A DNA stretch of 64,000 nt from Neoechinorhynchus agilis (taxonomy: Eukaryota; Animalia; Acanthocephala): NCBI GenBank assembly GCA_051530055.1, contig CM121342.1, positions 9,129,480 through 9,193,479 of the forward strand, written 5' to 3'. Position 1 is the first letter of the stretch, and every line of letters begins with the position of its first letter. The notes beneath the pieces were generated by a model. The model ran no database searches. It saw nothing but the letters and a program-made list of their open reading frames with translations, and was not told the origin of the DNA. Below are positions 9,735-54,172 of this stretch, piece by piece. A program made the position numbers and the translations under genes.

Positions 9735-10031
9735 TTACTGTTGCCATTGCTCCTCGTCTTCCTCTGAGGTATTGTCTTCTTGTAGCTCATTGAAAAGGCT
9801 TCTAAGTCCTTGATAAAATTCTCCAAGAGCTGGTGGAACGTATTCATCATCAGGGGTCCCGCTTATAACTGCAGAAATGATTTCATCGATAACAGCTATG
9901 TGATTAGCTACTTCCATTTGTTCTGTTGTATTGTCCGGTTCATTATCCTCGTTAAAAGTGAAATCCTCCTCATCAGAAGAGTCGCTAGGCCATTCATTGT
10001 TTGGTTGCTTTGGTATTGCTCTATCGCGCAT
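9735..10031 (-). CDS. 98-aa acidic protein, multi-copy cassette A (copy 1)
   Basis: Same 297-nt frame in 7 intact copies in the window. Upstream on the minus strand there is TATAAA (about 10160) and a CCAATCAG box (about 10235). Confidence 0.6.
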   Translation of the reverse strand: MRDRAIPKQPNNEWPSDSSDEEDFTFNEDNEPDNTTEQMEVANHIAVIDEIISAVISGTPDDEYVPPALGEFYQGLRSLFNELQEDNTSEEDEEQWQQ

Positions 10032-10389
10032 CGTAGAATTGAAGAAAATGTTTGCTTGATTTGTTGGCTGCTGTAGAAAGATTGATGGTTGTATACTGCG
10101 CGATTTGTTTCACATACACGCGAAATAGGGGGTCCATTGATTCTCTTCATATAAATTATTTATAGATCAGCGAGAGATCGGCGGCCATTTGATCTATTGT
10201 TTTTAATTTCATATCCTGTTTTCTTAGGGGAACCAATCAGCGTGCGCCGTTCGATGATATCTACGGGAGGGGGGATTAAATTTCATTCTTAATTAAAACG
10301 AGGTGTTTTATCAAATCATTTGCGCTTGTGACCGTAATCATGGCAGAAATTTAGAATTACAGGTGGAATAATTCATTGACAATAAAAAT

Positions 10390-10651
10390 CCATTTTATAC
10401 TCAAAGGCAAAGAAGATGTTCTGCAGCGTAGGAACTACCGCGGCATCAAACTCATGTCTCACACAATTAAACTATGGGAACGAATGATCGATCACAGGAT
10501 CAGAGAAGAGATCCGAATCAGCGAGGATCAACGAGGATTTGTGCCCGGCAAAAGCACAATCGACGCAATATTCGTGCTCAGGCAGCTGTATGAGAGTTCA
10601 GTGAGATGCGTTGCTCGTTGGACAGTGTGTTCGTCGATTTGGAAGGGGCGT
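10390..10651 (+). mobile_element. RTE-clade non-LTR RT fragment
   Basis: NYRGIKLMSHTIKLWERMID...QRGFVPGKSTIDAIFVLRQL. Confidence 0.9.
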
Positions 10652-11583
10652 ACAACACGTTATGCGCTTCAGGATAGCGTCGTAGTCGGAAGTGTGTCTA
10701 ATGGTTTTAAGCGAGAAGGATCCGGTTAGAAACTCTAACAGATATATTCATGTATTTTTTAATGAGGCAACCATTTTTGAACGAGTGAATGTTTCGTGAC
10801 ACATTAGGAAACGAGGGGAAATGTTGTTAAATGAATATTATATTAATTAGTAAAATCCTTAAAAGCATTTAATGATCTAGAGTTAGTCTCCGACAATCAC
10901 ATCAGGGGACCATTCCCGGAACCATTGTTAGTAATCTCTTGAAAATTTATTAACTTTTCTAGGTGGTATGTAAATATTACATAAAATTATACGCTGTATT
11001 AATCGATAAAAATCATTGATACAAAATAATTGGATGGCAAGCTTTTCATTTTTATTTTGATATAAAAGTTTGGGATAATGTTCTTTTTCAATAAAAGTTC
11101 GTAACCCTCCCGAAAATCCGATATGTTTAATCGATGGGTTCGTAAAAGTTGGAGGTAAAATATAGGGTTCAAAAATCGAATATGATATGGCAGCTGAAGT
11201 GTCCGATTCCTGTATTCAGATAACATCCCTTTCTTATATATTACCCTGTTCAATGACCTCACAAGAAATATGGCTATCCTTCGATATATTGTATAATATA
11301 ATACTTTTATTTTTTGTCATAATGCAAAGGGTGAAGAGCAATTTCGTCCCTTAGGAAAAATTTATTGGTCGAGCTTTCTTTTAAATGGGGTAGGGTCTGT
11401 AACATGATCTACAATCATCTATTCGTCGCACTCTGGTGTACCAGTCTCCTTGTTTTCTTTTACATAATTTTTTAGCAGATTAATTTCTTCATCTTTCCCA
11501 TCGACTTTTTTTAGAATTTTTATCTGTTCTTGTAAGGAATTAAGTTGAGACATTAAAGATTTAATTATATTACTTTCTGATGA

Positions 11584-12346
11584 ACATAATAAAGTACAAA
11601 ACGTGCAATCACCACCGTCCGCAAAATTGGAGCTTCTCTTCTTCCTCGGCTGTCGCTATCACGCTAGCCGAATTGCCTCGTTGTACTGCGAGAAGATATT
11701 TTGTCGCAGGAATACACCTGCTCGTCCGTCGATGGTCGTTTCTCTCAATTTCTTCGAGAGATCTTGGAGCAGAGAGAGTGCTGAGCTGCCAAGCGCTCCA
11801 TACGTCTCTACTCCGAAGGGGACAAAATAGTGGACCTTGCTAATTCTCTATATTTTCGTACCTTCCTCCCTTCCGCTGCACTGGCTGCACCTCCAGCGAT
11901 TTCGAGAAAGTAGGGGATGTTGCTTACTGCGAGGGGCGTGGCGTCTTCAAGAAGGCATTTGCCCTCCCGCCACGGAAAGACCGGGATTTCGTCTGGTCGA
12001 TGACCGTCTAGTCGACAAAGATGGGCGGGTTCCAAGATGTTGAGGAAGTTCGCCGTTTTCAACGCCCGAGAAATTACGCTATTGATCTCAGAATTGCGGG
12101 AGAACCTTCCTCCTGACTTTCGGAAAAGGAGACCGTGTCGCCCGAGAGCATCAACCAAAGACCCACATCGACAGCGATGGGGCGTGCATATCAGGAGACC
12201 AACTCATAAGGACACTGAGACCCTCGTTACCTCATCATTGAGAAGAGTTCCCACAGATGCCAGAGGAACAGCCTCCAACCACACCCCGATTCTCGTGTCA
12301 AAACTGCCAACAATCTAGCCCGGACGATCCCATCGCGAGAACCTGA
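11584..12346 (-). mobile_element. 5'-truncated CRE-like non-LTR copy (RLE end) with a 12-bp TSD
   Basis: GRHGL...EINSVISRAL..LEPAHLCRLDG.RPD..PWREGK. ACTTTCTGATGA at 11572-11583 and 12347-12358. Confidence 0.9.
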
Positions 12347-12645
12347 ACTTTCTGATGATTGAATTATTTGATTTTGATGGGGATAGGAGCGAGTTGGGTA
12401 ATTTTTATTGGCCCATACGTTAGATTTTTGCCCGCTGAGATGTTCACTGGATTTGAAATATTTAGCCGCGGCGGGGCAGAACCTTTTATAGGCCTTATGA
12501 TCTCCACAGCAGTTACAGCAAATTACTTTATTATTTTTTTGTGCCATCAGAAGACTTGATTCTCGGCGCAAATTCCGCATTTCAGCTCATTTCTACATTG
12601 CGAAAGTGTGTCCCCCCCCAATGATTGCATTTGGGCATTGCGTTA

Positions 12646-15100
12646 AGATGTAATCATAATTAGAGTTATTCCTTGCTCCCATTCATCGGCGCTGGCCAAA
12701 ATGCTAGCCCCATTGCCCCGCTGCACCGCAATGCTTATTTTTTGCGCCAAGAACGACGTCGATCTTGGCTCTCCAGTCGCTGCGTAAATTCGTTTCCCCA
12801 AGTCCTTCAGGAGGGCTAGTGCCGACCCTCCCAAGGCCCCATACGTTTCTACACCGAAGAAGACAAAATGGTAATTTCGGATTAGCTCCCTGTATTTTGA
12901 GCATTCCCGATCCTCTGCAGCCGTCGCCGCTCCTCCTGGACCTTTTTTCGAGTGGCTGATGTTGGAGTTTGCCAACGTGTCCACACACGTTGCATCCCAC
13001 AACAATCATTTTCCCTCCCGCCAAGGAAGGGCGTCTTCCATCTAATCTACAAAGATTTGTGGGTTCTAGAATGTTTGGGAGGGAAAGCGTTTTTCGAGTT
13101 CTACTCAGAATGGCATTGATTTCAGCATGCCTTGGAAATCGTCCCGCTGACGTCTTGCATATGAGACCGTTTCTCCCCGAAGCATCCACTATAATGCCGC
13201 AGCGGCAGCGATGGGGGATGCAAATCGGTAGGCCTAATCTCAAGAATACTGCGATCCTGACGACTGAGTCAGCAATGAGCGTTCCAAGTTTCCCTACAGG
13301 GAGAGCATTCAGCCACGCTCCCGACTCCTTCGTGGAACAGGCTACCAGCCGGACCTGAGACACCTTACCCAGAAGATCTTTGAAAGAGTTGTGAATCTTC
13401 TGAACAAGAGGAATGTCCCAAGACGACTGTTTGCACTCATTTGCGGGGAGCTGGTTGATGCCTGTCAATTGATGCCATTGAGATAATCCCGTGGCAAAGA
13501 TCAAATCCTTCACTGGTGTGCCTAAAATGGCATCGACATAGACTTTACTTGCCCGGCAAGAGGAGAGGAAGGCAGGTAAAGCGACGTTTGAAGTGGTGCG
13601 AACTCCCAAACAACCATAAGCCGTGGGAAAAGTAGCCTGTCACCAACCTGTGTCAGAAAATTTGACATTCAATATATGTCCCAGCTGCTTACGAATTACC
13701 CCGTCGAGCTCTCCTAACAATTTGTCTTCTCCGAAACATGGAGCTGCTCTTAGCTTATGAAGCAATTTCGGCATATAGAGGCAATTCTTGATCAAGAAGA
13801 GACCCTCATGTGCCGAAAGCTCAGAAGTTCGGCCGCAGAGCAACTCCATTTTCAAGATTTGTGCGCGCAGGTCCTTCGCAACATTCTCAGCAAGAACGCA
13901 GCTCCCGAGGAGTGTGAGCTGGTCAAGCGTGATCAAACCTAGACCAGGAGCAACTGATTCAAAATCGCTAGAGATTTGAGAGCGCTCGTTTTCAGTTGCG
14001 TTCAGGATGAGAAGTTCGCATTTTTGGGGATTTATTTCTGTTCCCAAGCGGTCCGCTTCATTCACGATCCTTTGAAGGTCGCTCAAAACTATACTTGGAT
14101 CACCACCGAGTGTGGCATCGTCCAAGTACCAAGCGTTGAAAGAAGAAACCATTGAATGGGCAAGATCATTTACTGCGACGGAGAAACCTATGGGGCCGAG
14201 TGGATCTCCCTATTGTACACCGCTCTGCGACTAAATTATTTTGTCATTTTATAGCAGTGGCGTATGGTTAGCATATGCTCTCCAGAAATAACGATAAGCC
14301 TCTGGGACGACATCCTCAATTGCTTTTAACATTATTTCCATTTTTAAGGTATTGAAAGCATATTTAAAATCTACTTTCAGAATTGCTGTTGGCTTTGTTC
14401 TTTGGGGGGTAAATTTTCGCAGAGCACGCACGACCGCTTCAACTCCACGAGAAGTGCAGCAACCTAACTGACGGGGTCTTAAAAGTTCTCCCGTTTTATC
14501 GGAGATTCTCCTGCATAAAACTTTCGCGGCTAACCTACGCAAAGTGCAGCCAATGGCGATGGGACGAATCCCACCATCTTTCTTGGACAAAGCACACAAA
14601 GAGGCGCCGAAGAAAAGATGTGTAGCTAAATTGCCAATGGAGCCCTCGATGAAAATATGAACTATTGTAAGCAAAGCAGTTCCGATGGCTATTCCCGAAG
14701 CACCTGTAGAAAAAAGACATCAGGTCTTTGAGGTGCTGTGGACGCAAGCCATTTGGCCCGTGTCCTGAGCCATTGGCGAAGGAATACACAGCTTTTCTTA
14801 TTTCTAAAATATTTGCTCGAAAAGCCTGAGCAATTGGTGTAAAATTGGTGGAATTGGACTTCGATGACGGATGCAACTTTAATAGAGCCTCAAAAGTTGT
14901 GCCATGATTCGGCGCAAAATCTTCAGTTGAGGCTAGAAGCCGAACCGCACCGCGAACATCCCCGTCTGCGAGCTTCGCCGAAACGCGTTGACCCAGTGGC
15001 CGAACTGTGCCTTGTTCACGGCTTTTACTAGACGAATTTTCGGGAGTCGCTGAGGATTCTGTCATTCTCTTAAAATTCGCGTCGAACTCCACTAGCCTAT
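12646..15100 (-). mobile_element. Degraded CRE-like RT/RLE retrotransposon
   Basis: LADGDVRGAVRLL, GGIRPIAIG, DFKYAFN, WYLDDATLGG, LWDATCVDT; stops and frameshifts present. Confidence 0.92.
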
Positions 15101-15103
15101 TTC

Positions 15104-15247: not shown

Positions 15248-16350
15248 GTTATTCCTTGGAAATGAAAAATTTATCCAATGAGCTAAGAATCCGACTGAGG
15301 TTCCCTTTAATTTCTCAATGACTTTCACTGGAAATTGAGCTATTACAGCATATGCAGGTTTTTCCGGATTTTGATATAGTAATTTTATTGGTTCAACATG
15401 AAATTTCCGTTCAAAGAGTTGGAAGTCTTCCTTCTTCAAGTTGGGAATATTTTAGACCAGAAGAGAACATTTTCGTGAAATATTACTGAAATCCAATTTG
15501 GTTATCCTTTAACATTTTTGAAAATAAGTATAATCCTTCATAACTTAGAAAGGCGATGATATGGGTTCATTTTGTGGAGAAGTGTTTCTTAATCTGATAT
15601 ATTTTAGCATTTTCACAATTTTTTGGAGTTAGTTGACAAACTGGTTCTTAATGACATTATTTATGGTTGCGTTTTTAATACTTTCTTTTGTAAGACGCAA
15701 AGTCTAGGCAGTTTCGGAATGAAACCATTATTTTCACTTTTTGGTAAATGGGATGCCCGTTATATTCAACCTTCTTAACCGAGGCAACGAAACCAACGTT
15801 AGAATTTATCATATTTTTGTTAGGGAAAGATAATCCTTCATTATCAACAACCATAATTGGAATTTGGTCATTCGCAAATAAACTGTGGGAAGATAACAAC
15901 ACATCTTTAACCTTCATTCTTCTTCTTTACACGTTCTTCAACGAGAACGGAAGACGTTCCTTTAAGCTCCAATCTTGATTACATCGGAGGACTAAACAAT
16001 TAATTGCTCTGTCTTTCAAAGCATGCATTTTGGATTGAAAGAATAATACCAAATTTGTTTTACAAATCATCTGAAAAAAAATTGTAGACGATTGAATTTC
16101 TTTCAGTTATTATGTTTCGTTTACTTATTTAAATTTTTTTCCATTTGTTGAAATGTTTATATCAAAAATATTATGTGGGTTCGTTAAAATGCAGTTTATG
16201 ATTCGTGTCTATGAATTTTTTCGATGGCGTTTTATATTGAAATTTGGATATGAACCGAAATTATGGTGTTTTCAATTGCATCTCTGAAACAAAAGCTCTG
16301 TATCAATATATTTAAAAAGAAATGGCGAATTTATAGAATTGGCGGAAGTT

Positions 16351-16647
16351 TTACTGTTGCCATTGCTCCTCGTCTTCCTCTGAGGTATTGTCTTCTTGTA
16401 GCTCATTGAAAAGGCTTCTAAGTCCTTGATAAAATTCTCCAAGAGCTGGTGGAACGTATTCATCATCAGGGGTCCCGCTTATAACTGCAGAAATGATTTC
16501 ATCGATAACAGCTATGTGATTAGCTACTTCCATTTGTTCTGTTGTATTGTCCGGTTCATTATCCTCGTTAAAAGTGAAATCCTCCTCATCAGAAGAGTCG
16601 CTAGGCCATTCATTGTTTGGTTGCTTTGGTATTGCTCTATCGCGCAT
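16351..16647 (-). CDS. 98-aa acidic protein, cassette A (copy 2)
   Basis: Protein identical to copy 1; part of the direct duplication 9474-10651 = 16090-17267. Confidence 0.6.
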   Translation of the reverse strand: MRDRAIPKQPNNEWPSDSSDEEDFTFNEDNEPDNTTEQMEVANHIAVIDEIISAVISGTPDDEYVPPALGEFYQGLRSLFNELQEDNTSEEDEEQWQQ

Positions 16648-17004
16648 CGTAGAATTGAAGAAAATGTTTGCTTGATTTGTTGGCTGCTGTAGAAAGATTG
16701 ATGGTTGTATACTGCGCGATTTGTTTCACATACACGCGAAATAGGGGGTCCATTGATTCTCTTCATATAAATTATTTATAGATCAGCGAGAGATCGGCGG
16801 CCATTTGATCTATTGTTTTTAATTTCATATCCTGTTTTCTTAGGGGAACCAATCAGCGTGCGCCGTTCGATGATATCTACGGGAGGGGGGATTAAATTTC
16901 ATTCTTAATTAAAACGAGGTGTTTTATCAAATCATTTGCGCTTGTGACCGTAATCATGGCAGAAATTTAGAATTACAGGTGGAATAATTCATTGACAATA
17001 AAAA

Positions 17005-18890
17005 TCCATTTTATACTCAAAGGCAAAGAAGATGTTATGCAGCGTAGGAACTACCGCGGCATCAAACTCATGTCTCACACAATTAAACTATGGGAACGAA
17101 TGATCGATCACAGGATCAGAGAAGAGATCCGAATCAGCGAGGATCAACGAGGATTTGTGCCCGGCAAAAGCACAATCGACGCAATATTCGTACTCAGGCA
17201 GCTGTATGAGAGTTCAGTGAGATGCGTTGCTCGTTGGACAGTGTGTTCGTCGATTTGGAAGGGGCGTTACGATACGGTCCCTCGAGATCTGGTGTGGGCA
17301 TGCCTCAGGAAAAGGAATTGTCCCGAACATTAAGCGATGTTTCGAGAATGCGATGGCACAGCGGAACGATGGACTTTTTCCGAGTCTCAGTCGGTCTGCA
17401 AATGGGGTTCGGCTCTTAGCCCATTCTTGTTCACGATCGTGTTAGACGTCCTCGTCAGCTGTGGAGCGTAAAGCTGTCGCATCTCTTCAAGAAGATTGGA
17501 CCATCAGAAAGATTTGTAGCAAGGAAGTGGACACGCTCAGAAATTTGCTGGAGAGTTGGCGACAGCGATTAGAGAGCAACGGATTGAGAGTGAGCAGGTG
17601 AAAAAATGATCAACCAACTGATTTGGGTACGAGATGCAACGGAGACGACCACTGGCTATTTGAGCGTCTAATGATTCCAAGATCCTCCATATTTTTGAAT
17701 TCGGATTTAGTAATAGCGAGTTTATCGAGCGGGAGGTGTCGCGGTCTAGCATGGAGTGGTTGTCCGTGTGTCTCAATAATGTGCTCCACTGCATGTTTGG
17801 TCAAAACGTCCGAAAAGGTAGGTCTCGTTATATCGGGGAAATCTGCGAGAATTTTACTAAATTCGTCGTTCTTCGATCTGCGAAAATCGACGCTGAGGGC
17901 TTCGATCGATACAGGAACGGAGGCTAATGGTATCGTTGCGAAAGTTTCTGCACTAACCAACTGCTTATTCCTTACGTCGACCAGTAAAACTGAGTGTCGG
18001 AGGAAATCAGCGCCTAGGATAGGGTGGTAAACCGCGGCAATAGTGAGCATCCATTCCGTGTGAGTTTTAGCGAAATTCAACTGCAGTAGCTTATTGCCGA
18101 ATGTTGGGATTATTGAACCGTTTGCAGCTGTAAGTGCTCTGCCAGGGTGTTTGGTCGGTTTATCGAGTGTTGTGGCTGGAAGGACGCTGATTTCGGCACC
18201 AGTATCCACTAGGAACCGTCGTAAAGTTTGGCGTTCGTTTAGGAAAAAGAGGCTATTGACAGAGGGACCGATCATCATTGCCTCTACTAATGATCGGTCA
18301 ATTCGTTACTTCGATATGCAAGGAATTCAGATCGAAAAGATCTTCAAATATTTGGGCAGCACGTTGAGCATGCAATGTGAGCTCACACCAGAGATCGGAC
18401 AAAGAGTTCAATGCGTGTGGAACAACTGGAGGAAGACAACAGGCATCCTTTGCGATAAGCTTCTCCCGAACAAGCTCAAAGGGCGGGTGTACAAGGCAGT
18501 AGTGCGACCCGCAATGCTTTACGGAGCAGAGACGTGGGCTACGAAGGAGGAAGACGTTCAACGATTAGCCGTCAACGAAATGGGGATGCTGAGATGGTCT
18601 GCAGGATTGACACGCAAGGATCGAGTGAACAATGAGGAGGTGCGAAAGCTGCTTGCTGTCGAGCCGATCGAGGAGGCAATCGCTAGGAGGCGGATGCGAT
18701 AGTATCTGCATGTGACCGCCTGGGTAAAGAGCGCATGGATAATCGAGCTCGAGGGGAAAAGGAGAAAAGGGAGACCCAAAAAGAGGTGGGACGACAATAT
18801 GAGCGGAGATTTCAAGACGCTGGGAAAGGCGAAGAACAAAGACGAAAGCCGACAATGCTGGAAAAACCACTTCTCAAGTGAGAGAAAAGT
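17005..18890 (+). mobile_element. RTE-clade non-LTR relic interrupted by a gypsy fragment
   Basis: RT motifs as at 10390, then FKYLGS..NKLKGRVYKAVVRPAMLYGAETWA..EMGMLRWSAG..RGRPKKRW. Confidence 0.9.
17612..18288 (-). mobile_element. Internal gypsy fragment (protease plus RT start), no LTRs
   Basis: FLVDTGAEISVLP, ILGADFL, WSSPLHLVPK; AATGATC direct repeats at 17605-17611 and 18289-18295. Confidence 0.88.
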
Positions 18891-20058
18891 TCAAAAAAAT
18901 GTTGTTGTTTATACTTGAATTGCTGTAAAAGATGAAGAGAATGTAGTTATTTATATATAAACCTTAGTAATTTCCATTAATTTAGTGTTTATTAATCAAT
19001 TCTGATTTTATAACTTATTAATTTCGCCTTTTAGAAATTCACATGTTATCAGCGAGAATATTCGAGAATTTTTCTTTAGTTTTACTGCAATCTTCTTTTT
19101 CTCTCAGAGATTGTAATTAGTAACCAAGTCGCATTCTAAAAGGAAATAAGTTCGATCGTGTTTTAATCGGAAATATCGCCCAGAAAAATATTCACACTCT
19201 ACGAAGAAGGTTTACTTGAACAGTCCCTTGTTTTGTTTTCTCTTTTATAACCATCAAAATCATCGGGAGCACTTGTATATCGCACAATCTCTTTATTTGG
19301 GTTGCCCATCCTCTGATATTGCAAAATTTGAAGATAAACTTATCGAAAGCGTTCTTAAATGTGTACGCGAATTTATATCACTGTTCAGGAGGACGATATC
19401 TCACGGCGAAGACCAGGCCCAAGATCGCTCAAGTACCTTAGGCTCTCTTAGCGGCCTTTTGTTCCAGGACCATCATGAGGTTTTTTATTTGTTTAGGTCC
19501 TTAAAGCCCGAGAACCCCGAGGTAAAAGTACAGTCCATTGTGAAAAGTTTTCTATCCATTGGTAGTTGGCCTTGGTAAAAAAATTCTTGTTTGAGCACCT
19601 TGTTTTCGTTGAGTTTAGAGCAAATCGCATGGATAGGAGAGTCATATCACGGAACATGGGGAGATCCAATAGTTTGCGACGGTCTGTTATGTCGTCGGCT
19701 CAACCTGTATGGGACTTATTAATTTTGCAATTCTGAATAAAGAACCGAGAAACGATGCCGAACAAAATAAGTTGCAAGGGTGAGCATTGAAGAAAGGTCC
19801 TCTTCGGGCGTCGAGAAAGATAGTTACACTGGATCAAAAGATATACCGCTTTTAATAATCAATCGAAGATGGGAGGAATATGTTCTCGTTTTAAGTGCTC
19901 CTGTGACGTATAACCCTCCAATGAAATAGTGCTTGAAGACTTTTTAACACTTGGAAACACTGCTCGCATTTTGCGGCCCATATTTCAGGCTCTCTTGATT
20001 CCACTTGTGAGAAAGGAGGAATTCTCGGCCTCCATTTACTTGTTCCTAAAAAAATGTT

Positions 20059-23964: not shown

Positions 23965-24290
23965 TTTACAATAATAGAACACAAAACATGTAATCACCAC
24001 CGTCCGCGCTGAAGTGCAGCCAGTGCAGCGGAAGGGGGGGAGGTACGAAAATATAGGGATTTAGCAAGGGCCCACTATTTTGTCCCCTTCGGAGTAGAGA
24101 CGCATTTAGCGCTTTCTCAGCTCGGCACTCTCTGCTCCAAGATCTCTCGAAGAAATGGAGAGAAACGACCATCGACGGACGAGCAGGCGTATTCCTTCGA
24201 CAAAATATCTCGCTTGCAGTACAACGAGGCAATTCGGCTAGCGTGATAGCGACAGCTGAGGAAGGAGAGAAGCTAAGATTTTGCGGACGA
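23965..24290 (-). mobile_element. CRE 3' fragment inserted within a MITE/foldback structure
   Basis: Homologous to 11590-11900. Flanked by TIR-family motifs and by inverted repeats at about 23780-23860 and 24530-24590. Confidence 0.8.
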
Positions 24291-29860: not shown

Positions 29861-30283
29861 GGATTATTTTTACCAAAATTATAAAAGATAAATGGTTGAT
29901 ACAGAAATGGACAATAAGCTAATGATTACAATTATCTCGGTAATGTAATTCTGCATTTTGGATTTAAACTATAATACCGATTTTGTTTTACGGATTATCT
30001 GTAAAAAATCGCAGACTTAAAAAGATTGAATTTCTTTCAGTTATTATGTTTCGTTTACATATTCAAATTTTTTTGCATTTGTTGAAATGTTTATATCAAA
30101 AATATTATGTGGGTTCGTTAAAATGCAGTTTATGATTCGCGTCTATGAATTTTTCGATGGCGTTTTATATTGAAATTACGATATGAACCGAAATTATGGT
30201 GTTTTCAATTGCATCTCTGAAACAAAAGCTCTGTATCAATATATTTAAAAAGAAATGGCGAATTTATAGAATTGGCGGAAATT

Positions 30284-30580
30284 TTACTGTTGCCATTGCT
30301 CCTCGTCTTCCTCTGAGGTACTGTCTTCTTGTAGCTCATTGAAAAGGCTTCTAAGTCCTTGATAAAATTCTCCAAGAGCTGGTGGAACGTATTCATCATC
30401 AGGGGTCCCACTTATAACTGCAGAAATGATTTCATCGATAACAGCTATGTGATTAGCTACTTCCATTTGTTCTGTTGTATTGTCCGGTTCATTATCCTCG
30501 TTAAAAGTGAAATCCTCCTCATCAGAAGAGTCGCTAGGCCATTCATTGTTTGGTTGCTTTGGTATTGCTCTATCGCGCAT
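30284..30580 (-). CDS. 98-aa acidic protein, cassette A (copy 3)
   Basis: Intact 297-nt frame. Confidence 0.6.
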   Translation of the reverse strand: MRDRAIPKQPNNEWPSDSSDEEDFTFNEDNEPDNTTEQMEVANHIAVIDEIISAVISGTPDDEYVPPALGEFYQGLRSLFNELQEDSTSEEDEEQWQQ

Positions 30581-31424
30581 CTCAGAATTGTAGAAAATGT
30601 TTGCTTGATTTGTTGGCTGCTGTAGAAAGATTGATGGTTGTATACTGCGCGATTTGTTTCACATACACGCGAAATAGGGGGTCCATTGATTCTCTTTATA
30701 TAAATTATTTATAGATCAGCGAGAGATCGGCGGTCATTTTATCTATTGTTTTTAATTTCATATCCTGTTTTCTTAGGGGAACCAATCAGCGTGCGCCGTT
30801 CGATGATATCTACGGGAACGGAGATTAAATTTCATTCTTTATCAAATAATTTGCGCTATTGACCGTAATCATGGCAGAAATTTAGAATTACAGGTCGAAT
30901 AATTCATAGACAATCAAAATCCTTTGTAACCAATGACCTAGTCGAATTCCAATAGAAAATCTGCCTAATGGGTTAAATTGACATTTGAATATTTCGTTCA
31001 AGTTTTGTTTAATTTAAAATGATCTTAAAAAAACTCGTTCCAAAATTGAAACTCACATTTTTGGATTAATTAAAGGTAGCCATTGAAATTAACAATATTA
31101 ACAGGTTTTTGTTGATGTTCAACAGATAAACCGACTGTGTGTATGTTTTTCCTTAACGTTCATCACAAACTTAAAATCAAATCATGTTCATTTTTTTGTC
31201 CATGACAATTAGTTATTCAAGAAATTCGTTGTCTTTGCAGAATCGCTAATTCGAAAATTTCAAATATGGAATTCGACGTCAAACAGATTTTTGTTGTTTT
31301 TTCAGCATTTATTTTTAAAATTTGTTGTTAAAAAGTTCGCGTAGAACGAATTTATGTCGTTCTGGGACTACTTGAAGCAGAATTCAAATTAGAGGACCAA
31401 TTGATATTATTAAAAATTACAATT

Positions 31425-31591
31425 ATGATAAGTTTTACACTTAAAGCGGTTGTAGAATCCAATGGTTTCCAATTTTTTTTAACAACGCCAACAAAAATTG
31501 TTACGCTGGATCAAAAGATGTTCCGTTGGCGATAATGAATCAAAGATGGAAGCAATATGTTCTCGTTTCTAGTGATCCCGTGACGTATTAA
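31425..31591 (+). pseudogene. Frameshifted copy of the 54-aa ORF C
   Basis: 8 T instead of 6 in the CAA-TTT-TTT-AAC run; this could also be a homopolymer read error. Confidence 0.4.
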
Positions 31592-31794
31592 ATTTGTTTA
31601 AAATTGACCTAATCGATTAGCGCTTCAAAATCAAATATTACTGCCATGCGCTAATTTGATTGATATTAAAATTCATTTGTTGTTTTTTAAATGATTGAAT
31701 AGCGACATTGACAAAAATTGAGGTTTAAAGTAGCAAAAGCTCTGTATCAATATATTTAAAACGAAATGGCAAATTTATAGAATTGGCAAAAATT

Positions 31795-32091
31795 TTACTG
31801 TTGCCATTGCTCCTCGTCTTCCTCTGAGGTATTGTCTTCTTGTAGCTCATTGAAAAGGCTTCTAAGTCCTTGATAAAATTCTCCAAGAGCTGGTGGAACG
31901 TATTCATCATCAGGGGTCCCGCTTATAACTGCAGAAATGATTTCATCGATAACAGCTATGTGATTAGCTACTTCCAGTTGTTCTGTTGTATTGTCCGGTT
32001 CATTATCCTCGTTAAAAGTTAAATCCTCCTCATCAGAAGATTCGCTGGGCCATTCATTGTTTGGTTGCTTTGGAATTGCTCTATCGCGCAT
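31795..32091 (-). CDS. 98-aa acidic protein, cassette A (copy 4)
   Basis: Intact frame with D17E, F24L and M39L relative to copy 1. Confidence 0.6.
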   Translation of the reverse strand: MRDRAIPKQPNNEWPSESSDEEDLTFNEDNEPDNTTEQLEVANHIAVIDEIISAVISGTPDDEYVPPALGEFYQGLRSLFNELQEDNTSEEDEEQWQQ

Positions 32092-32435
32092 CGTAGAATT
32101 GCAGAAAATTTTTGCTTGATTTGTTGGCTGCTGTAGAAAGATTGATGGTTGTATACTGCGCGATTTGTTTCACATACACGCGAAATAGGGGGTCCATTGA
32201 TTCTCTTTATATAAATTATTTATAGATCAGCGAGAGATCGGCGGTCATTTTATCTATTGTTTTTAATTTCATATCCTGTTTTCTTAGGGGAACCAATCAG
32301 CGTGCGCCGTTCGATGATATCTACGGGAACGCAGATTAAATTTCATTCTTTATCAAATAATTTGCGCTATTGACCGTAATCATGGCAGAAATTTAGAATT
32401 ACAGGTCGAATAATTCATTGACAATAAAAATCCTT

Positions 32436-32600
32436 ATGATAAGTTTTACACTTAAAGCGGTTGTAGAATCCAATGGTTTCCAATTTTTTAACAACGCCAA
32501 CAAAAATTGTTACGCTGGATCAAAAGATGTTCCGTTGGCAATAATCAATCAAAGATGGGAGCAATATGTTCTCGTTTCTAGTGATCCCGTGACGTATTAA
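32436..32600 (+). CDS. 54-aa ORF C (MISFTLKAVVESNG...RWEQYVLVSSDPVTY)
   Basis: Repeated in the array with synonymous differences; a diverged in-frame homolog lies at 19822-19929. Confidence 0.4.
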   Translation: MISFTLKAVVESNGFQFFNNANKNCYAGSKDVPLAIINQRWEQYVLVSSDPVTY

Positions 32601-32802
32601 ATTTGTTTAAAATTGACCTAATCGATTAGCGCTTCAAAATCAAATATTACTGCCATGCGCTAATTTGATTGATATTAAATTCATTTGTTGTTTTTTAAAT
32701 GATTGAATAGCGACATTGACAAAAATTGAGGTTTAAAGTAGCAAAAGCTCTGTATCAATATATTTAAAACGAAATGGCAAATTTATAGAATTGGCAAAAA
32801 TT

Positions 32803-33099
32803 TTACTGTTGCCATTGCTCCTCGTCTTCCTCTGAGGTATTGTCTTCTTGTAGCTCATTGAAAAGGCTTCTAAGTCCTTGATAAAATTCTCCAAGAGCTG
32901 GTGGAACGTATTCATCATCAGGGGTCCCGCTTATAACTGCAGAAATGATTTCATCGATAACAGCTATGTGATTAGCTACTTCCAGTTGTTCTGTTGTATT
33001 GTCCGGTTCATTATCCTCGTTAAAAGTTAAATCCTCCTCATCAGAAGATTCGCTGGGCCATTCATTGTTTGGTTGCTTTGGAATTGCTCTATCGCGCAT
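32803..33099 (-). CDS. 98-aa acidic protein, cassette A (copy 5)
   Basis: Intact frame. Confidence 0.6.
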   Translation of the reverse strand: MRDRAIPKQPNNEWPSESSDEEDLTFNEDNEPDNTTEQLEVANHIAVIDEIISAVISGTPDDEYVPPALGEFYQGLRSLFNELQEDNTSEEDEEQWQQ

Positions 33100-33952
33100 C
33101 GTAGAATTGCAGAAAATTTTTGCTTGATTTGTTGGCTGCTGTAGAAAGATTGATGGTTGTATACTGCGCGATTTGTTTCACATACACGCGAAATAGGGGG
33201 TCCATTGATTCTCTTTATATAAATTATTTATAGATCAGCGAGAGATCGGCGGTCATTTGATCTATTGTTTTTAATTTCATATCCTGTTTTCTTAGGGGAA
33301 CCAATCAGCGTGCGCCGTTCGATGATATCTACGGGAACGTAGATTAAATTTCATTCTTTATCAAATAATTTGCGCTATTGACCGTAATCATGGCAGAAAT
33401 TTAGAATTACAGGTCGAATAATTCATTGACAATCAAAATCCTTTGTAACCAATGACTTAGTCGAATTCCAATAGAAAATCTGCCTAATGGGTTAAATTGA
33501 CATTTGAATATTTCGTTCAAGTTTTGTTTAATTTAAAATGATCTTAAAAAAACTCGTTCCAAAATTGAAAGTCACATTTTTTGAATTAATTAAAGGTAGC
33601 CATTGAAATTAACAATATTTACAGGCTTTTATTGATGTTTATCAAGTTCAACAGATAAATCGACTGTGCATATGTTTTTCCTTAACGTTCATCACAAACT
33701 TAAAATCAAATCATGTTCATTTTTTGTCCATGACAATTAGTTATTCAAGAAATTCGTTGTCTTTGCAGAATCGCTAATTCGAAAATTCCAAATATGGGAT
33801 TCGACGTCAAACAGATTTTTGTTGTTTTTTCAGCATTTATTTTTAAAATTTGTTGTTGAAAAGTTCGCGTAGAACGAATTTATGTCGTTCTGGGACTACT
33901 TGAAGCAGAATTCAAATTAGAGGACCAATTGATATTATTAAAAATTACAATT

Positions 33953-34117
33953 ATGATAAGTTTTACACTTAAAGCGGTTGTAGAATCCAATGGTTTCCAA
34001 TTTTTTAACAACGCCAACAAAAATTGTTACGTTGGATCAAAAGATGTTCCGCTGGCGATAATCAATCAAAGATGGGAGCAATATGTTCTCGTTTCTAGTG
34101 ATCCCGTGACGTATTAA
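33953..34117 (+). CDS. 54-aa ORF C copy
   Basis: Intact frame. Confidence 0.4.
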   Translation: MISFTLKAVVESNGFQFFNNANKNCYVGSKDVPLAIINQRWEQYVLVSSDPVTY

Positions 34118-34320
34118 ATTTGTTTAAAATTGACCTAATCGATTAGCGCTTCAAAATCAAATATTACTGCCATGCGCTAATTTGATTGATATTAAAATTC
34201 ATTTGTTGTTTTTTAAATGATTGAATAGCGACATTGACAAAAATTGAGGTTTAAAGTAGCAAAAGCTCTGTATCAATATATTTAAAACGAAATGGCAAAT
34301 TTATAGAATTGGCGGAAATT

Positions 34321-34617
34321 TTACTGTTGCCATTGCTCCTCGTCTTCCTCTGAGGTATTGTCTTCTTGTAGCTCATTGAAAAGGCTTCTAAGTCCTTGAT
34401 AAAATTCTCCAAGAGCTGGTGGAACGTATTCATCATCAGGGGTCCCGCTTATAACTGCAGAAATGATTTCATCGATAACAGCTATGTGATTAGCTACTTC
34501 CATTTGTTCTGTTGTATTGTCCGGTTCATTATCCTCGTTAAAAGTTAAATCCTCCTCATCAGAAGATTCGCTGGGCCATTCATTGTTTGGTTGCTTTGGA
34601 ATTGCTCTATCGCGCAT
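34321..34617 (-). CDS. 98-aa acidic protein, cassette A (copy 6)
   Basis: Intact frame. Confidence 0.6.
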   Translation of the reverse strand: MRDRAIPKQPNNEWPSESSDEEDLTFNEDNEPDNTTEQMEVANHIAVIDEIISAVISGTPDDEYVPPALGEFYQGLRSLFNELQEDNTSEEDEEQWQQ

Positions 34618-34961
34618 CGTAGAATTGCAGAAAATTTTTGCTTGATTTGTTGGCTGCTGCTGAAAGATTGATTGTTGTATACTGCGCGATTTGTTTCACA
34701 TACACGCGAAATAGGGGGTCTATTGATTCTCTCTATATAAATTATTTATAGATCAGCGAAAGATCGGCGGTCATTTGATCTATTGTTTTTAATTTCATAT
34801 CCTGTTTTCTTAGGGGAACCAATCAGCGCGCGCCGTTCGATGATATCTACGGGAACGGAGATTAAATTTCATTCTTTATCAAATCATTTGCGCTTTTGAC
34901 CCTAATCATAGCAGAAATTTAGAATTACAGGTCGAATAATTCATTGACAATAAAAATCCTT

Positions 34962-35126
34962 ATGATAAGTTTTACACTTAAAGCGGTTGTAGAATCCAAT
35001 GGTTTCCAATTTTTTAATAACGCCAACAAAAATTGTTACGCTGGATCAAAAGATGTTCCGTTGGCAATAATCAATCAAAGATGGGAGCAATATGTTCTCG
35101 TTTCTAGTGATCCCGTGACGTATTAA
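34962..35126 (+). CDS. 54-aa ORF C copy
   Basis: Intact frame. Confidence 0.4.
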   Translation: MISFTLKAVVESNGFQFFNNANKNCYAGSKDVPLAIINQRWEQYVLVSSDPVTY

Positions 35127-35329
35127 ATTTGTTTAAAATTGACCTAATCGATTAGCGCTTCAAAATCAAATATTACTGCCATGCGCTAATTTGATTGATA
35201 TTAAAATTCATTTGTTGTTTTTTAAATGATTGAATAGCGACATTGACCAAAATTGAGGTTTAAAGTAGCAAAAGCTCTGTATCAATATATTTAAAAAGAA
35301 ATGGCAAATTTATAGAATTGGCGGAAATT

Positions 35330-35626
35330 TTGCTGTTGCCATTGCTCCTCGTCTTCCTCTGAGGTATTGTCTTCTTGTAGCTCATTGAAAAGGCTTCTAA
35401 GTCCTTGATAAAATTCTCCAAGAGCTGGTGGAACGTATTCATCATCAGGGGTCCCGCTTATAACTGCAGAAATGATTTCATCGATAACAGCTATGTGATT
35501 AGCTACTTCCATTTGTTCTGTTGTATTGTCCGGTTCATTATCCTCGTTAAAAGTTAAATCCTCCTCATCAGAAGATTCGCTGGGTCATTCATTGTTTGGT
35601 TGCTTTGGAATTGCTCTATCGCGCAT
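35330..35626 (-). pseudogene. Disrupted cassette A copy (copy 7)
   Basis: W14 TGG changed to TGA at 35585-35587, and the terminal TAA changed to CAA. Confidence 0.65.
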
Positions 35627-36487
35627 CGTAGAATTGCAGAAAATTTTTGCTTGATTTGTTGGCTGCTGCTGAAAGATTGATGGTTGTATACTGCGCGATT
35701 TGTTTCACATACACGCGAAATAGGGGGTCCATTGATTCTCTTTATATAAATTATTTATAGATCAGCGAGAGATCGGCGGTCATTTGATCTATTGTTTTTA
35801 ATTTCATATCCTGTTTTCTTAGGGGAACCAATCAGCGTGCGCAGTTCGATGATATCTACGTGAAGGGGGGGGATTAAATTTCATTCGTTATTAAAACGAG
35901 ATATTTAATCATATCAATAGCGCTTGTGACCTTAATCATGGCAGAAATTTAAACTCTCAGGTGGAATAATTCATTGACAATAAAAATCATTCGTAACTAG
36001 TGGTCTAGTCGAATTCCAAGGGGAAATCTGCCTAATGGGTGAAATTGAAATTTGAATAATTCGTTCTATTTTGTTTAATTTAAAATGATCTTGAAAAAAC
36101 TCGTTTTAAAATTGAAACTCACATTTTTTGGATTAATTAAAGGTAGCCATTGAAATTAACAATATTTACATTTATCAAGTTCAACAGATAAATCGACTGT
36201 GCATATGTTTTTCCTTAACGTTCATCAAAAACTTAAAATCAAATCATGTTCATTTTTTTTGTCCATGACAATTAGTTATTCAAGAAATTCGTAGTCTTTA
36301 CGGAATCGTTAGTACGAAAATTCCAAGTATGGAATTCGACGTCAAACGGATTTTTGTTGTTTTTTCAGCATTTATTTTTAAAATTTGTTATTAAAAAGTT
36401 CGCGTAGAACGAATTTATGTCGTCCTGGGACTACTTGAAGCAGAATTCAAATTAGAGGACCAATTAATATTATTGAAAATTACAATT

Positions 36488-36673
36488 ATGATAAGTTTTA
36501 CACTTAAAGCGGTTGTAGAATCCAATGGTTTCCAATTTTTAAATAACGCCAACAAAAATTGTTACGTTGGATCAAAAGATGTTCCGCTGGCAATAATCAA
36601 TCAAAGATGGGAGCAATATGTTCTCGTTTCTAGTGATCCCGTGACGTATTATGTTTGCTTAAAAATGACCTAA
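36488..36673 (+). CDS. ORF C copy with a lost stop and a short extension
   Basis: ..DPVTYYVCLKMT*. Confidence 0.35.
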   Translation: MISFTLKAVVESNGFQFLNNANKNCYVGSKDVPLAIINQRWEQYVLVSSDPVTYYVCLKMT

Positions 36674-37943
36674 TCGATTAGCGCTTCAAAATCAAATATT
36701 ACTGCCATGCGCTAATTTGATTGATATTAAAATTCATTTGTTGCTTTTTAAATGATTGAATAGCGACATTGACAAAAATTAAGGTTTGAAGAAACAAGAA
36801 CTCATAAATTTTCTGTTACCTCTGAATAAAACGCGGAACTCGGACGATGCATGGTGGAAGCCACCCATTAGACAAACACGATTAAACGCATTCCCTCGAC
36901 GATTGAACGGGTATCACTAATCAATTGAATTTGTCTAAAAATTGAAAGACGAATAACTCAGAAGATAGATTTAGAATCAGCACGTTGAGATGACTAAATG
37001 AACATAATCAATTTTTGCTAGATTTCGTATCAAAGTGGTACATCGCGTATTTTTGCTCGGATTTCGCACCTAGAGCCTTTATCCCGCATCGAAGGCGACT
37101 CGGCATTTGCTAATCCCTTCCTCCATTTTTCGATGTAAAAGGCTTTGTGGTGGGTGCAACCTCGAAACCGGAGGTTTGAGTGTAACGTATCGGAGGAAAT
37201 GTTGTTTCGGCAGGCCTTTAGGATGCTTCAGCCCTTCACCGGGAATTACTCGCTCGTAACTCGTGGCCATATTAACTTAAGCGAACCCCTCGCTTTTTGT
37301 CCCTGATCCGGACTGCACAAATATCTGTTCCGTATATAGTCATTATTTTTCCGGTCAAGCATGGTTGTGTCATTTATCCAACTCAACGTTTTCGTCTCCA
37401 TCGTCTATGGTCGCCATCGGCTGATAGTATTTAAAATGTTCAACGAGTGATAGGTCGATGTTGTTTATCGTGAGCGGATCTCTCTCTCTTTATTACCTGT
37501 TGTGAGACTCGAAACTCCTACAAAACAAAAGTCTGGTTGTGCAACGGGGGAACGCTGAATCCGTCCTGATTCAAAGCGCTGGTGTGAATGCTGGTAAGAT
37601 TTGGCCGAGAAAATAAATTTTTCAAAGCTCCTCACCGACAAAGTGAACCGACTTTTGCGGATATTTTTGTGTGTACCCAACCTTCTAATTTCATTTTTTC
37701 TATTTTGCAAAATCTGTCTTCTAGCGTCAAAAAGGCTGAGCGTTTGCGTTCCATATATCGTAATTTCCTGCGCAAACTGTCTCAGCAATTCTTGACAGCG
37801 TTCTTTACTTACGGACCGATAAGCTAGCTGAGAATTCGTTGTGTGGTCTCGGTCGGTCTTTTTTGAGGTCTTTCTTTACACAATGCAGCCGAACGTTGTC
37901 CTCTCGGATTCTGCCGTGCCGACTGTGACGTCATCAATTGTAG

Positions 37944-42473: not shown

Positions 42474-42954
42474 TATCCAGCAATTTCCTAAAAAAGAATT
42501 TAGCAAATACATCTTCCAATCGGCCGTGTTCACGTAATCAAAATCTCCGGAAGAAAGCTCATTTTAGTAACCAATGACGTCACAAGAAAATGTCGTCACT
42601 GCTATTGCGCATCACCAAATCGGTTGTTGTGTCTCGAAACGTGTTAAAATGCTTCCAGTTGACAATCACTCATCTCTTCTTGAGCTTAATCAGTGACGTT
42701 GTTAAAGTTTCATCCTCAATCACAATAAAATCTTTTTTCTATTTGAAGATCCTGAATTATTCATATTAAAATAAAGAAATAAAGTCGTTTGCTAAGAGTC
42801 GTACTGAGAAATTGAATTCTAGAATACATACCTGGAGGATTCATGCATAAAACTTCGATTTTAATATTTATCTAAATTTCTTCCACTTTTCTGTATTGGA
42901 AACGCTGAGATGCCTCGGAAAAGAAGTCGATTATTTCCTGCCCCATATCCCTGT

Positions 42955-43140
42955 TTCAGGGTCAAAGGGTTCGAATCCACGATCGCCAATGACGCACAAC
43001 CAAAGGGGACGAAATACCGCTGAAGGGAGGAAACTCACTGATGAGTCCCGCCTCCTGGAGGTATCTGAGGATCCGGAGAGATGTACGAACTCTTAACGTT
43101 TCATCCGAGTTTAAGTGGTTGCATCACTTCTCTGATGTAA
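42955..43140 (+). mobile_element. tRNA-derived SINE (5'-truncated) with a hammerhead-like core
   Basis: GGTTCGAATCC B box, CGCCA, then GGGGAC-GAAA...CTGATGA-GTCCC; homologous to 52311-52530. Confidence 0.65.
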
Positions 43141-43159
43141 AACAAAGTTTCTCTGATCG

Positions 43160-43620
43160 CCGAAAGTGCTAATTCACATCAATATACTCACGAACAAGAC
43201 CGAAATCAATCAAATGGATTATTTGTTGCGAATTTAATCGACATCCACTAACGAAATTCTCCGGTTTTATGTCACGGTGCACAGGAAATTTCTAATGCAG
43301 CGATTTTAGCCGTTGAAGGAATTAAAAAGCTAACATAAGAACTGGTTTCAACGTAGTGTAACGATTGTTGACCATTTGTAAAGTACTCAACTTTAGGTCA
43401 GCAACAGTTGCTTAAATGTTCGACTGTACAATTTAAAGATCATTTCTATGTTGTCTACCAATAAATAACCAATCATTGTTTTGAACAAGCCTTCACTAGT
43501 ATATTTGTAGATATTGCACTCGTGGAAGATGGTCTGAAATTTGCGATCCGCATCCTCAACAGTGATTGCCACTTCATTGTTTGTCTCCGAACTTCCTACT
43601 GCGAATAATCGTAGTTAAAT
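43160..43620 (-). pseudogene. Casein kinase 1-like pseudogene fragment
   Basis: [40 protein letters not shown], with stops and frameshifts. Confidence 0.75.
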
Positions 43621-44399
43621 CGTATTCTTCAACAAGCTCGAGAATCGTATCCATTCCGTCTTACGCCTTTTGAATTTGTGCCTATTTTAGCATCCCAAAT
43701 TTCTTGTGCTATTCTGGGCTCGACTCACTATTGACATGTTGGATTGCATACATCACGTAATCCAAATCGGTCAATCGGGATTTCATATAGTTCATGCTGG
43801 TAAATCAGCAAAAAACAGTTTGCGTCTTGTCTTTTTCCGAATATTCATTATTTGCTTCTTCCTCGGTCTTTGGCAAATCCCAAATCTTCATCTAAGGTTC
43901 CTTAACTGTAGTATTATACTTTGAGATCTTTTTCGCTGTCTGGCGTGGTAGGGCGGGGAGAGGGGACTTCCCCGAAGTATAGAAAGATCGTCATTTTTAC
44001 TCCCGCGAATCCCTTGGAGGCCGCTTCAAAATAAATATTGCCATCAACTAATTGAACTCCTAATATTGTGATGGAGCGTATAATTTATAAGAAAATAAGG
44101 CGTGGTAGATATAATACCTAAGTACCGAACGGCGTACAAGATTGTAGCTCCGAAAATAATCGGATTTAATAAAATTCCTTCAATTTTTCACCGCCGTAAA
44201 AACATTGTTGATTGTTCTATCAATGTCGAATTGTAACACACTCGAGCTATACTGAAATCTTCATTGCGAATTTTCAAGGCCTCCGCCTCCTTCTCAAACA
44301 TCGAAAAATGGTACCTAAGTTGGTAGCCTTGACTCGGGTGCGTGGGGACCGTCGATTCCCGAGGTGATGTTTCACCCCTGCGTAAAAGACCCATGGAGA

Positions 44400-49055: not shown

Positions 49056-49059
49056 CCGT

Positions 49060-52050: not shown

Positions 52051-52310
52051 CCATTAAACAAATATTCTTAAAATCTAAGAAATCCGCCAGTAGAATTGCC
52101 GGATAATCTTCTTAATTGTGAATATTTGCATAAACAACATTTTTGTTTGCTGGTTTCAGATCTTTGATCGAAAACTTCCAATATCTTATTTATTAATTAA
52201 GAATAGGTCAAAACATTTTACTTGATGTCCGACCCTTCCACGACCGTTTGGCCTTGAATTAACAAAATCAAAAACTTGCTGAGTTTGACATTTCGTAGTT
52301 GCGTCGAGGT

Positions 52311-52530
52311 GGTCAAGTGGGCCAATGCCCTTGATCGCAGTTAGGGTTCAACTGGTTCGAATCCGTTACCGCCAATGATGCACAACCAAAGGAAACGAAA
52401 TATCGCTGAAGAGAGGAAACTCACGGATGAGTCCCGCCCCTTGGAGGTATCTGAGAATCCGGGGCAATGTTCAAACTCCTTACCGTACACATCAGAGTCT
52501 AAGTATTTCAATCACTTCTCTGATGCAGGA
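52311..52530 (+). mobile_element. tRNA-derived SINE with a full head (A and B boxes) and a mutated hammerhead-like core
   Basis: TGGTCAAGTGG (A box), GGTTCGAATCC (B box), CGCCA, then a tail shared with 42955-43140. Confidence 0.7.
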
Positions 52531-52559
52531 GGTCGGCGGGCCGTGTGCCCAATGAAAAT

Positions 52560-53715
52560 TATCAGCAGCGGAAAAAAGGCCACACATAGACACTTAATAA
52601 AAATTATTTGTATGAAACGTCTTTCTTACAATGCATAAATTGTTCGTGTACCAATTGTTTTTGGTTGACCACTATAAAAAAGATACGATATGCAGAGAAG
52701 GGTGCGCCAGAATTCATATTTATGGGCCCAAGAAAGCTAGATTTGATGATGGTTTCTTTTAGGGGTTTCTTGGCCAAGGAAGAGCATTGGGCCAAGAATT
52801 GTTTAGCAGCTTGACATGATCTGGCGAAAGCAGGGTGAGGAAAAATGCAATTGGTGCATTTGACTTTTTTGGGGTCCGGACATTTATCCTTGCAGTGGTC
52901 TCCAGCGTAGAAAATACACCTATGAGTGATTTTTCATCCATGAGCCTGATGACCCCAGTGGGAGCAGTTCTGGCAAATAGTGAGATTGAAATCGTAGATC
53001 GAATCCCTATAATTGGTGAAGGATACCAAATGCGAGAACACATTTTTTTTGGAACCACATAAGCAATCAGCTACATCAATTGGGGCGGGGGGAGCTACTG
53101 TTTTTGCGGAATAGGTATTTTATGAGTTTGATTTTGAGATCGCTCTCAACAATTTTTTGTTCTTCAATCGGGAGATCAAGAGGAGGACCTTTCTGGAAAG
53201 ATCATCATGTTTTATTTTCATATCTGTAACCATATCTGAGAATATGGATTTTCCCTTGTTGTCGACAAAGGCAAAGAGAAAGCTGAACTTGTTGTCGAAA
53301 ATTCTTTTGAAACTATAAGTGGGAAGGTTACTTTGGTGTGATGAGAGAGTATGTTTGTTGTATTTTTCCAAAATATTGTATTTGGAGTGGAAGCCCATAT
53401 TTTCTTTGTGAATGCGAAGGATATAATCCTCCTTTTTGAGGGGAAGTTTGGTTATGGGAACTTGGATGGACGAATCAGAGGGAAGGAGAGGGCAGGGAGT
53501 GAAGACACAAATACCTCATCAGTCCGAAAACCTCCGCCTTCATCTCGAAGTGGAGGATGATCAACGGCGTCCATCCGAGAGTCCGACAAGACTGAGCGAT
53601 CACTTAGATCTTTAAAAACTAGCTGAGCGCAATCAATTCCTCGATCTTTAGACTCGTTTGTCGGTGCGCAGTTTTTAACCAAAAAAATTGCGCGACGACA
53701 TATTTTTCCCCTCAT
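52560..53715 (-). mobile_element. I/Jockey-like LINE ORF1 relic
   Basis: ICQNCSHWGH..AGDHCKDKC..KCTNCIFPHPAFARSC (three knuckles). Confidence 0.7.
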
Positions 53716-53875
53716 TTGCAGTTTATGATTCGCGTCTTTAAATTTTTTCGATGGCGCTTTATATTGAAATTACGATATGAACCGAAATTATGGTTTTCAA
53801 TCGCATTGTAGAAACAAAAGCTCTGTATCAATTTATTTAAAAAGAAATAGCGAATTTATAGAATTCGCGGGAATT

Positions 53876-54172
53876 TTACTGTTGCCATTGGTCCTCGTCT
53901 TCACCTGAGGTATTGTCTTCTTGTAGCTCATTGAAATGACTTCTAATTCGTTGATAAAATTCTCCAAGAGCTCCTGGAATGTATTCATCATCAGGGGCCC
54001 CACTTATAACTGCAGAAATGATTTCATCGATAACAGCTATGTGATTAGCTACTTCCATTTGTTCTGTTGTATTGTCCGGTTCATTATCCTCGTTAAAAGT
54101 GAAATCCTCCTCATCAGAAGATTCGCTGGGCCATTCATTGTTTGGTTGCTTTGGAATTGCTCTATCGCGCAT
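53876..54172 (-). CDS. Diverged 98-aa cassette A copy (copy 8)
   Basis: Same length, about 9 aa changes, upstream CCAATCAG retained (about 54385). Confidence 0.6.
   Translation of the reverse strand: MRDRAIPKQPNNEWPSESSDEEDFTFNEDNEPDNTTEQMEVANHIAVIDEIISAVISGAPDDEYIPGALGEFYQRIRSHFNELQEDNTSGEDEDQWQQ

Follow-up and report, generated by a model that had tools for sequence, protein, structure and literature searches.

A probable family of multicopy genes for a 98-residue hyper-acidic orphan protein in the acanthocephalan Neoechinorhynchus agilis

Several small acidic proteins of eukaryotes are well described. DSS1/Sem1, a small and acidic protein that partners BRCA2, the proteasome lid and TREX-2, wraps basic surfaces; it is single-copy and conserved across eukaryotes. 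Prothymosin alpha and parathymosin are histone-binding proteins of approximately 100-110 residues, about half of them acidic, with many extra copies in mammals. Prothymosin is wholly disordered, is devoid of aromatic and hydrophobic helices and carries a C-terminal nuclear localisation signal, and its extra copies are processed pseudogenes. In addition, acidic aromatic-anchor motifs are known in the H2A-H2B chaperones Spt16, Chz1, YL1, ANP32E and Swr1. Here, we describe a 64-kb stretch of genomic DNA (hereafter, the window) from Neoechinorhynchus agilis (Acanthocephala), a fish-parasitic thorny-headed worm, in which eight copies of an approximately 711-bp unit, all on the minus strand, carry or once carried an open reading frame (ORF) for a 98-aa hyper-acidic protein. 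Comparative analysis of these copies suggests that they probably constitute a real, amplified and taxonomically restricted family of protein-coding genes.

The 98-aa product has a mass of 11.3 kDa, a net charge of approximately -23 and 27 D/E versus 4 K/R residues, counts that agree exactly with the hyper-acidic composition reported in the initial annotation of this DNA. AlphaFold2 predicted a disordered head (residues 1-33), two helices (34-56 and 67-87) and a short acidic tail, and the two amphipathic segments noticed earlier both lie inside the predicted helices. Inspection by eye revealed a hydrophobic 3-4 spacing in helix 1 (V41, I45, I48, I52 and V55) as well as in helix 2 (L69, F72, L76, L79 and L83). 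Casein-kinase-2-type sites are clustered at S18, S19, T88 and S89, and aromatic residues are set in acidic runs (DEEDFTF, DDEYVPP and EEQWQQ). Neither a signal peptide nor a membrane segment was found when the protein was read from its sequence, and thus the 11-kDa product is probably intracellular. Like DSS1/Sem1, the protein is very small and strongly acidic, with aromatics (W, F) among acidic runs and helical segments; unlike DSS1/Sem1, it is multi-copy, has two long helices and gives no Pfam match up to E 10. It differs from prothymosin in that the worm copies carry putative promoter DNA and arose by duplication at the DNA level, and in the lack of any Pfam or HMMER match. The three aromatic runs resemble the anchors of H2A-H2B chaperones, although this appears to be a short, low-complexity resemblance with no domain homology. 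The likeness to DSS1, prothymosin and the chaperone anchors is one of style; no profile match to DSS1/SEM1 or prothymosin/parathymosin was obtained.

The initial annotation had listed eight copies, seven of them intact at 297 nt and one disrupted, and all of this was confirmed: the 98-codon, 297-nt ORF is intact in seven of the eight window copies and none of the eight carries an indel in its coding part, the disruption being due to base changes in one copy (G). The window copies are mutually 88-99% identical across approximately 700 bp, a relationship far beyond chance. Each is a compact gene unit of approximately 711 bp, with approximately 350 bp of upstream DNA, a leader of approximately 120 nt, the 297-nt ORF and a trailer of approximately 60 nt. 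In copy A, read in gene orientation, the ATG is at 10031 and the TAA at 9737-9735. Three further copies, located 73-84 kb beyond the end of the window, bring the known total to at least 11. All annotated family members, judged by the annotated proteins, are on CM121342.1 (a 16.4-Mb chromosome of GCA_051530055.1), within approximately 140 kb; the window is placed at roughly 9.13-9.19 Mb of this chromosome. The copies and the array that some of them form are as follows.

Gene unit A, 9674..10395, minus strand: ORF 9735-10031, 98 aa
Unit A, upstream elements: inverted CCAAT box at 10233-10240, YY1-like site at 10182-10190, TATAAATA at 10157-10164
Unit A, candidate 47-nt leader intron at 10071-10117; upstream boundary at about 10395
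Unit A, upstream neighbour: a 5'-truncated RTE-like LINE (long interspersed nuclear element) fragment adjoining the boundary, with an RVT_1 match at 10376-10729
Gene unit B, 16290..17011, minus strand: ORF 16351-16647, protein identical to that of A
Tandem array, 30223..36791, minus strand: order C-X-S-D-S-E-X-S-F-S-G-X-S
Gene unit C, 30223..30924, minus strand: ORF 30284-30580, N87S; opens the tandem array
Gene unit D, 31734..32433, minus strand: ORF 31795-32091; D17E, F24L and M39L
Gene unit E, 32742..33444, minus strand: ORF 32803-33099, coding sequence identical to that of D
Gene unit F, 34260..34959, minus strand: ORF 34321-34617
Gene unit G, 35269..35991, minus strand: pseudogene, ORF-equivalent 35330-35626, no indel
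Gene unit H, 53815..54520, minus strand: ORF 53876-54172; most diverged of the window copies, TATA box altered
Copy I, L001:10301-10597, outside the window
Copy J, L002:8773-9069, outside the window
Copy K, L002:10279-10575, outside the window

In G, codon 14 has changed from TGG to TGA and the stop codon from TAA to CAA. H differs from A at nine residues, all within residues 17-94. In J, codon 95 is a stop, the leader has a 36-bp deletion and upstream homology does not extend past the TATA region; this copy appears to be truncated with its promoter lost, while K is missing 47 bp that include the CCAAT box. G, J and K all appear to be undergoing decay.

Several comparisons among the copies indicate that the protein itself has been maintained. 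No indel was found in the 11 ORFs, versus at least seven indel events in approximately 420 bp of flanking unit DNA; simple arithmetic from these counts gives a chance of approximately 0.02 for indel-free ORFs under uniform placement. The divergence of the ORF is 2-3 times lower than that of the adjacent non-coding parts (5.1% versus approximately 8-16% between A and H; 2.7% versus 7-17% between A and K). This difference lies in the nonsynonymous sites, which change 3-8 times more slowly than the flanks (0.013 versus 0.098 between A and K, p=1e-5; p=5e-5 between D and K; p=0.002 between A and H), whereas the synonymous rate does not differ from the flank rate. Comparisons across the A/B/C, D-G and K lineages give pairwise ratios of nonsynonymous to synonymous rates (dN/dS) of 0.12-0.36, and in most lineages both frame and protein appear to be maintained. 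Start and stop codons are kept in 10 of the 11 copies, and the antisense ORF is intact in A-C and H only, while the sense ORF is kept. Codons 26-55 show a single change among the 11 copies; in residues 56-94 the changes are mostly replacements (approximately 16 nonsynonymous versus 3 synonymous). These patterns point to purifying selection on the protein, strongest in residues 1-55.

Relatives of the protein were sought at several levels. Pfam gave no family up to E 10, with either the whole protein or the helical core, and a PDB sequence search gave no relative. A word search of 5.8 billion proteins returned only Neoechinorhynchus agilis 'hypothetical proteins', and the GenBank entries matching the 98-aa ORF (ACOME3_006731 to _006760) are likewise from this species only. 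A full HMMER search of 1.84 billion representatives recovered the family's own cluster and one spurious match; the latter (P0010, E=6.5e-4), a 326-aa protein of bacterial type with internal repeats, matched over three short stretches and was rejected. No relative of the 98-aa protein was found among viral and metagenome contigs, and neither Pfam nor HMMER matched the ORF to transposon proteins. With regard to structure, Foldseek gave no match in the PDB, and a wide VIA-align search gave generic helical hairpins only, with Z up to 5.7, which is under the stated noise level for helical models and was discounted. The profile and structure searches thus yielded no family, structure or transposon-ORF match, and literature searches turned up nothing usable on acanthocephalan orphan genes or on the histone-anchor motif. 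The searchable collections are without sister-species genomes (N. buttnerae), and within this scope the family appears to be an orphan, so far known from Neoechinorhynchus agilis only. The earlier suggestion of a lineage-specific amplified gene is supported by this absence of relatives together with the signs of purifying selection.

The arrangement of the copies provides insight into how they multiplied. The array was resolved by self-BLAST; Tandem Repeats Finder missed it because the period exceeds 500 bp. The basic period of approximately 1010 bp comprises a gene unit and a 308-bp spacer, S, and a 506-bp segment, X, is present at the gene/S junction of every second unit, producing a 2.52-kb higher-order repeat. 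Outside the array, A and B belong to a 1.23-kb duplicate (9422-10651) with 98.5% identity, LINE fragment included. H and I belong to a duplicate of at least 9 kb (window 52690-62020 versus L001:2607-11784; 98.5-99.4% identical), its parts approximately 73-85 kb apart, which may reflect either a genuine duplication or the retention of a haplotype in the assembly. J and K make up a small duplicate of the array. Within the ORF, 29 of 120 informative site pairs failed the four-gamete test, and K has an A-like 5' end but is H-like at codons 75-78, which together indicate that the copies exchange sequence. The family has thus multiplied by tandem and larger segmental duplication accompanied by exchange (gene conversion or unequal crossing-over), with transposons apparently inserted later and individual copies apparently being lost (birth and death). 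As in histone repeats and the Drosophila hsp70 copies, the units are compact and possibly intron-poor, carry CCAAT and TATA elements and lie head to tail with a period of approximately 1 kb; the homology also breaks off sharply where the functional unit ends, and gene conversion homogenises the copies. Unlike histone repeats, they possess no 3' stem-loop or Rfam element, and their product is acidic and an orphan. The genomic behaviour of the family matches that of ordinary multigene families that are arranged in tandem and evolve by concerted and birth-and-death processes.

A boundary beyond which the flanks differ had been described in the initial annotation, and this was borne out. The upstream edge of homology lies at nearly the same point, within approximately 10 bp, in four contexts that are unrelated to one another, i.e., S, X, the 5'-truncated RTE-like LINE of A and B, and a 5'-truncated CRE-like LINE at H and I whose ORF begins at residue 194. 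Downstream, the sequence shared by all copies also ends sharply, approximately 62 nt past the stop codon, with two unrelated continuations beyond. An S-like remnant (19809-19911, 82% identical) lies beyond the LINE of copy B, suggesting that S is the original flank, with the LINEs and X as insertions at the junction. In our view, the sharp edges mark the extent of the unit that is under selection and conversion, combined with an insertion-prone, AT-rich junction, although the common upstream boundary is odd. The idea that X, S and the class-1 flanks are diverged homologues was discarded, as local alignments were no better than shuffles. Spacer S (32434-32741 and copies) contains a 54-aa ATG ORF that diverges from the upstream edge of the gene. 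This ORF was considered as a partner gene and rejected: the frame is shifted in one array copy, read through its stop in another and closed by an early stop where X replaces S, and the ORF is absent from the other flanks. The ORF is thus unlikely to be a real gene, and S itself may be a piece of a transposon.

Three other explanations were weighed. The copies could be non-functional, i.e., an open frame in the GA-rich DNA of a young segmental duplicate whose similarity is kept by youth and gene conversion. Several observations agree with this and weigh against our interpretation. No homologues are known, and searching public assemblies and transcript contigs for the exact 98-aa sequence gave nothing on record. 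Nonsense changes are not depleted but arise at about the neutral rate (2 among approximately 30 versus approximately 1.3 expected, because 4.3% of possible changes make stops), and dN/dS in the H/I lineage is near 1 (0.55-1.2). Gene conversion is clear and could contribute to the low divergence of the ORF, and the small divergences leave few changes behind each test. In addition, the AlphaFold model is moderately confident (mean predicted local distance difference test score, pLDDT, 61; predicted template modelling score, pTM, 0.28), the deposited gene models bear on the exact transcript structure through their inconsistent N-terminal extensions, and the functional interpretation draws on composition and motif resemblance alone. 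However, gene conversion treats both classes of sites alike, and hence a slowdown confined to nonsynonymous sites counts against a non-functional origin. The 11 indel-free frames amid flanks that carry indels, the upkeep of the sense rather than the antisense ORF and the retention of start and stop codons argue in the same direction, and we consider that such an origin is unlikely. Slightly less probable still is the proposal of a mobile non-autonomous cassette, in which the 711-bp unit moves as a defined whole with its own promoter and ORF. Its sharp downstream end and its nearly constant upstream end across four contexts would be expected of such an element; however, no terminal inverted repeats were found, and inspection of the junctions by eye found no target-site duplication, poly-A or Helitron-type termini. 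Moreover, no transposon protein is matched, the annotated members are confined to a small part of one chromosome, and the S-like remnant fits insertion of a LINE into an S-type flank rather than insertion of a cassette. The copies share long flanks and were duplicated along with them, over 1.2 kb in A/B, at least 9 kb in H/I and 1.0/2.5 kb in the tandem array, and the mobile cassette proposed in the initial annotation is thus not supported; duplication is the better account.

A gene family could also have been amplified through genetic conflict, e.g., in the role of drive element, suppressor or antidote, with copy number and helix 2 engaged in an arms race. The family is young, lineage-restricted and locally amplified in a transposon-rich region, its replacements cluster in residues 56-94, and dN/dS is approximately 1 or more between H/I and D-G. 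Nevertheless, the array contains no conserved partner gene, the 54-aa spacer ORF being frameshifted or read through in some copies and missing from other flanks, and the numbers are too small to tell relaxed from positive selection. Positive selection between H and I was considered and rejected, as their three replacements equal the 1.5% background divergence of the duplicate. Conflict is therefore a remote explanation. An equally remote variant is a dosage-amplified polyanionic decoy, e.g., a DNA mimic or a mimic of histone-binding surfaces that would neutralise a basic selfish factor such as a transposon, virus or drive protein; helix 2 would then diversify alongside an unchanging acidic head.

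For a family of functional genes, a tentative mechanism can be outlined from the composition and predicted fold of the product. The disordered acidic head would carry the casein-kinase-2-type serines and the aromatics among acidic residues, and the two amphipathic heptad helices would probably pack as a hairpin or dimerise, with the acidic tail at the end. Such a protein might bind or chaperone basic proteins stoichiometrically as a polyanion, with histones or other nucleic-acid-binding proteins as candidate partners, and additional gene copies would raise its dosage. This role as a binder of basic proteins is the functional reading that we favour, but it is speculative and much less probable than the existence of the gene family itself. 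The roles suggested in the initial annotation (DNA or histone mimic, chaperone, transactivator, and antidote in a genetic conflict) are likewise conjectural.

The conserved DNA upstream of the ORF was also examined. Every window copy contains one occurrence each of CCAATCAG, CGG(C/T)CATTT and the boundary string GAATAATTCAT(T/A)GACA, which gives exactly eight of each in the window, as had been claimed for the conserved upstream elements; the exception is the TATA-like box TATAAATA, which is intact in seven of the eight window copies and altered in H, where TGTAGATA is found and another TATA-like run lies 8 bp beyond it. The YY1-like site is AAATGGCCG at 10190-10182 in A, with ATGACC in most copies, and it is a poor match to the YY1 consensus. 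A promoter belonging to the unit is a reasonable, though unproven, reading of this conservation. In the leader of copy A, a candidate 47-nt intron (GTATGT...ACAG, 10117-10071) is used by one deposited model. BRAKER models have been deposited for 10 copies and are inconsistent at the 5' end: the GenBank models ACOME3_006731-006760 contain five different N-terminal extensions, joined through predicted introns and starting from non-conserved upstream ATGs. Since the extensions differ between copies and these ATGs are not conserved, the conserved product is the 98-aa ORF, whose conserved start is the MRDR methionine. Rfam recorded no family at threshold in the window, and no histone-type 3' stem-loop was present.

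Acanthocephalan genomes are very small and fast-evolving, that of N. agilis being 46 Mb (PMC12690905), and little is known of lineage-specific acanthocephalan genes. An orphan gene kept by selection in roughly ten functional copies would be a concrete candidate for parasite-specific biology. The family also illustrates, cleanly and on a small scale, birth-and-death combined with concerted evolution, although it overturns nothing alone.

The DNA surrounding the copies is eukaryotic in character and contains a Ran GTPase ORF, a homeodomain-like ORF, ORFs of LINE and long terminal repeat (LTR) retrotransposons, and satellites. The Ran-type GTPase ORF (219 aa, uninterrupted; 8103-8762, minus strand; Pfam Ras E=2.6e-47) lies approximately 1 kb downstream of copy A, and a 137-aa ORF at 27709-28122 weakly matches the homeodomain (E=2e-5) and has an acidic tail. 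An intact 991-aa LINE ORF is located at 37944-40919, with truncated relatives at 11612-15008, 24016-24287, 54511-56401 and 60893-63999. Two satellite arrays were identified, one at 1-1664 with a 187-bp period and 97-98% identity, the other at 6487-7930 with units of approximately 200 and 370 bp and 88-93% identity. Finally, 41410-43848 and 56462-58901 form a 2.44-kb inverted duplicate, 99.7% identical, each arm of which carries an intact 252-aa ORF with no Pfam match (41775-42533, minus strand; 57777-58535, plus strand), and a third copy of this duplicate (99.4%) is present in L001/L002.

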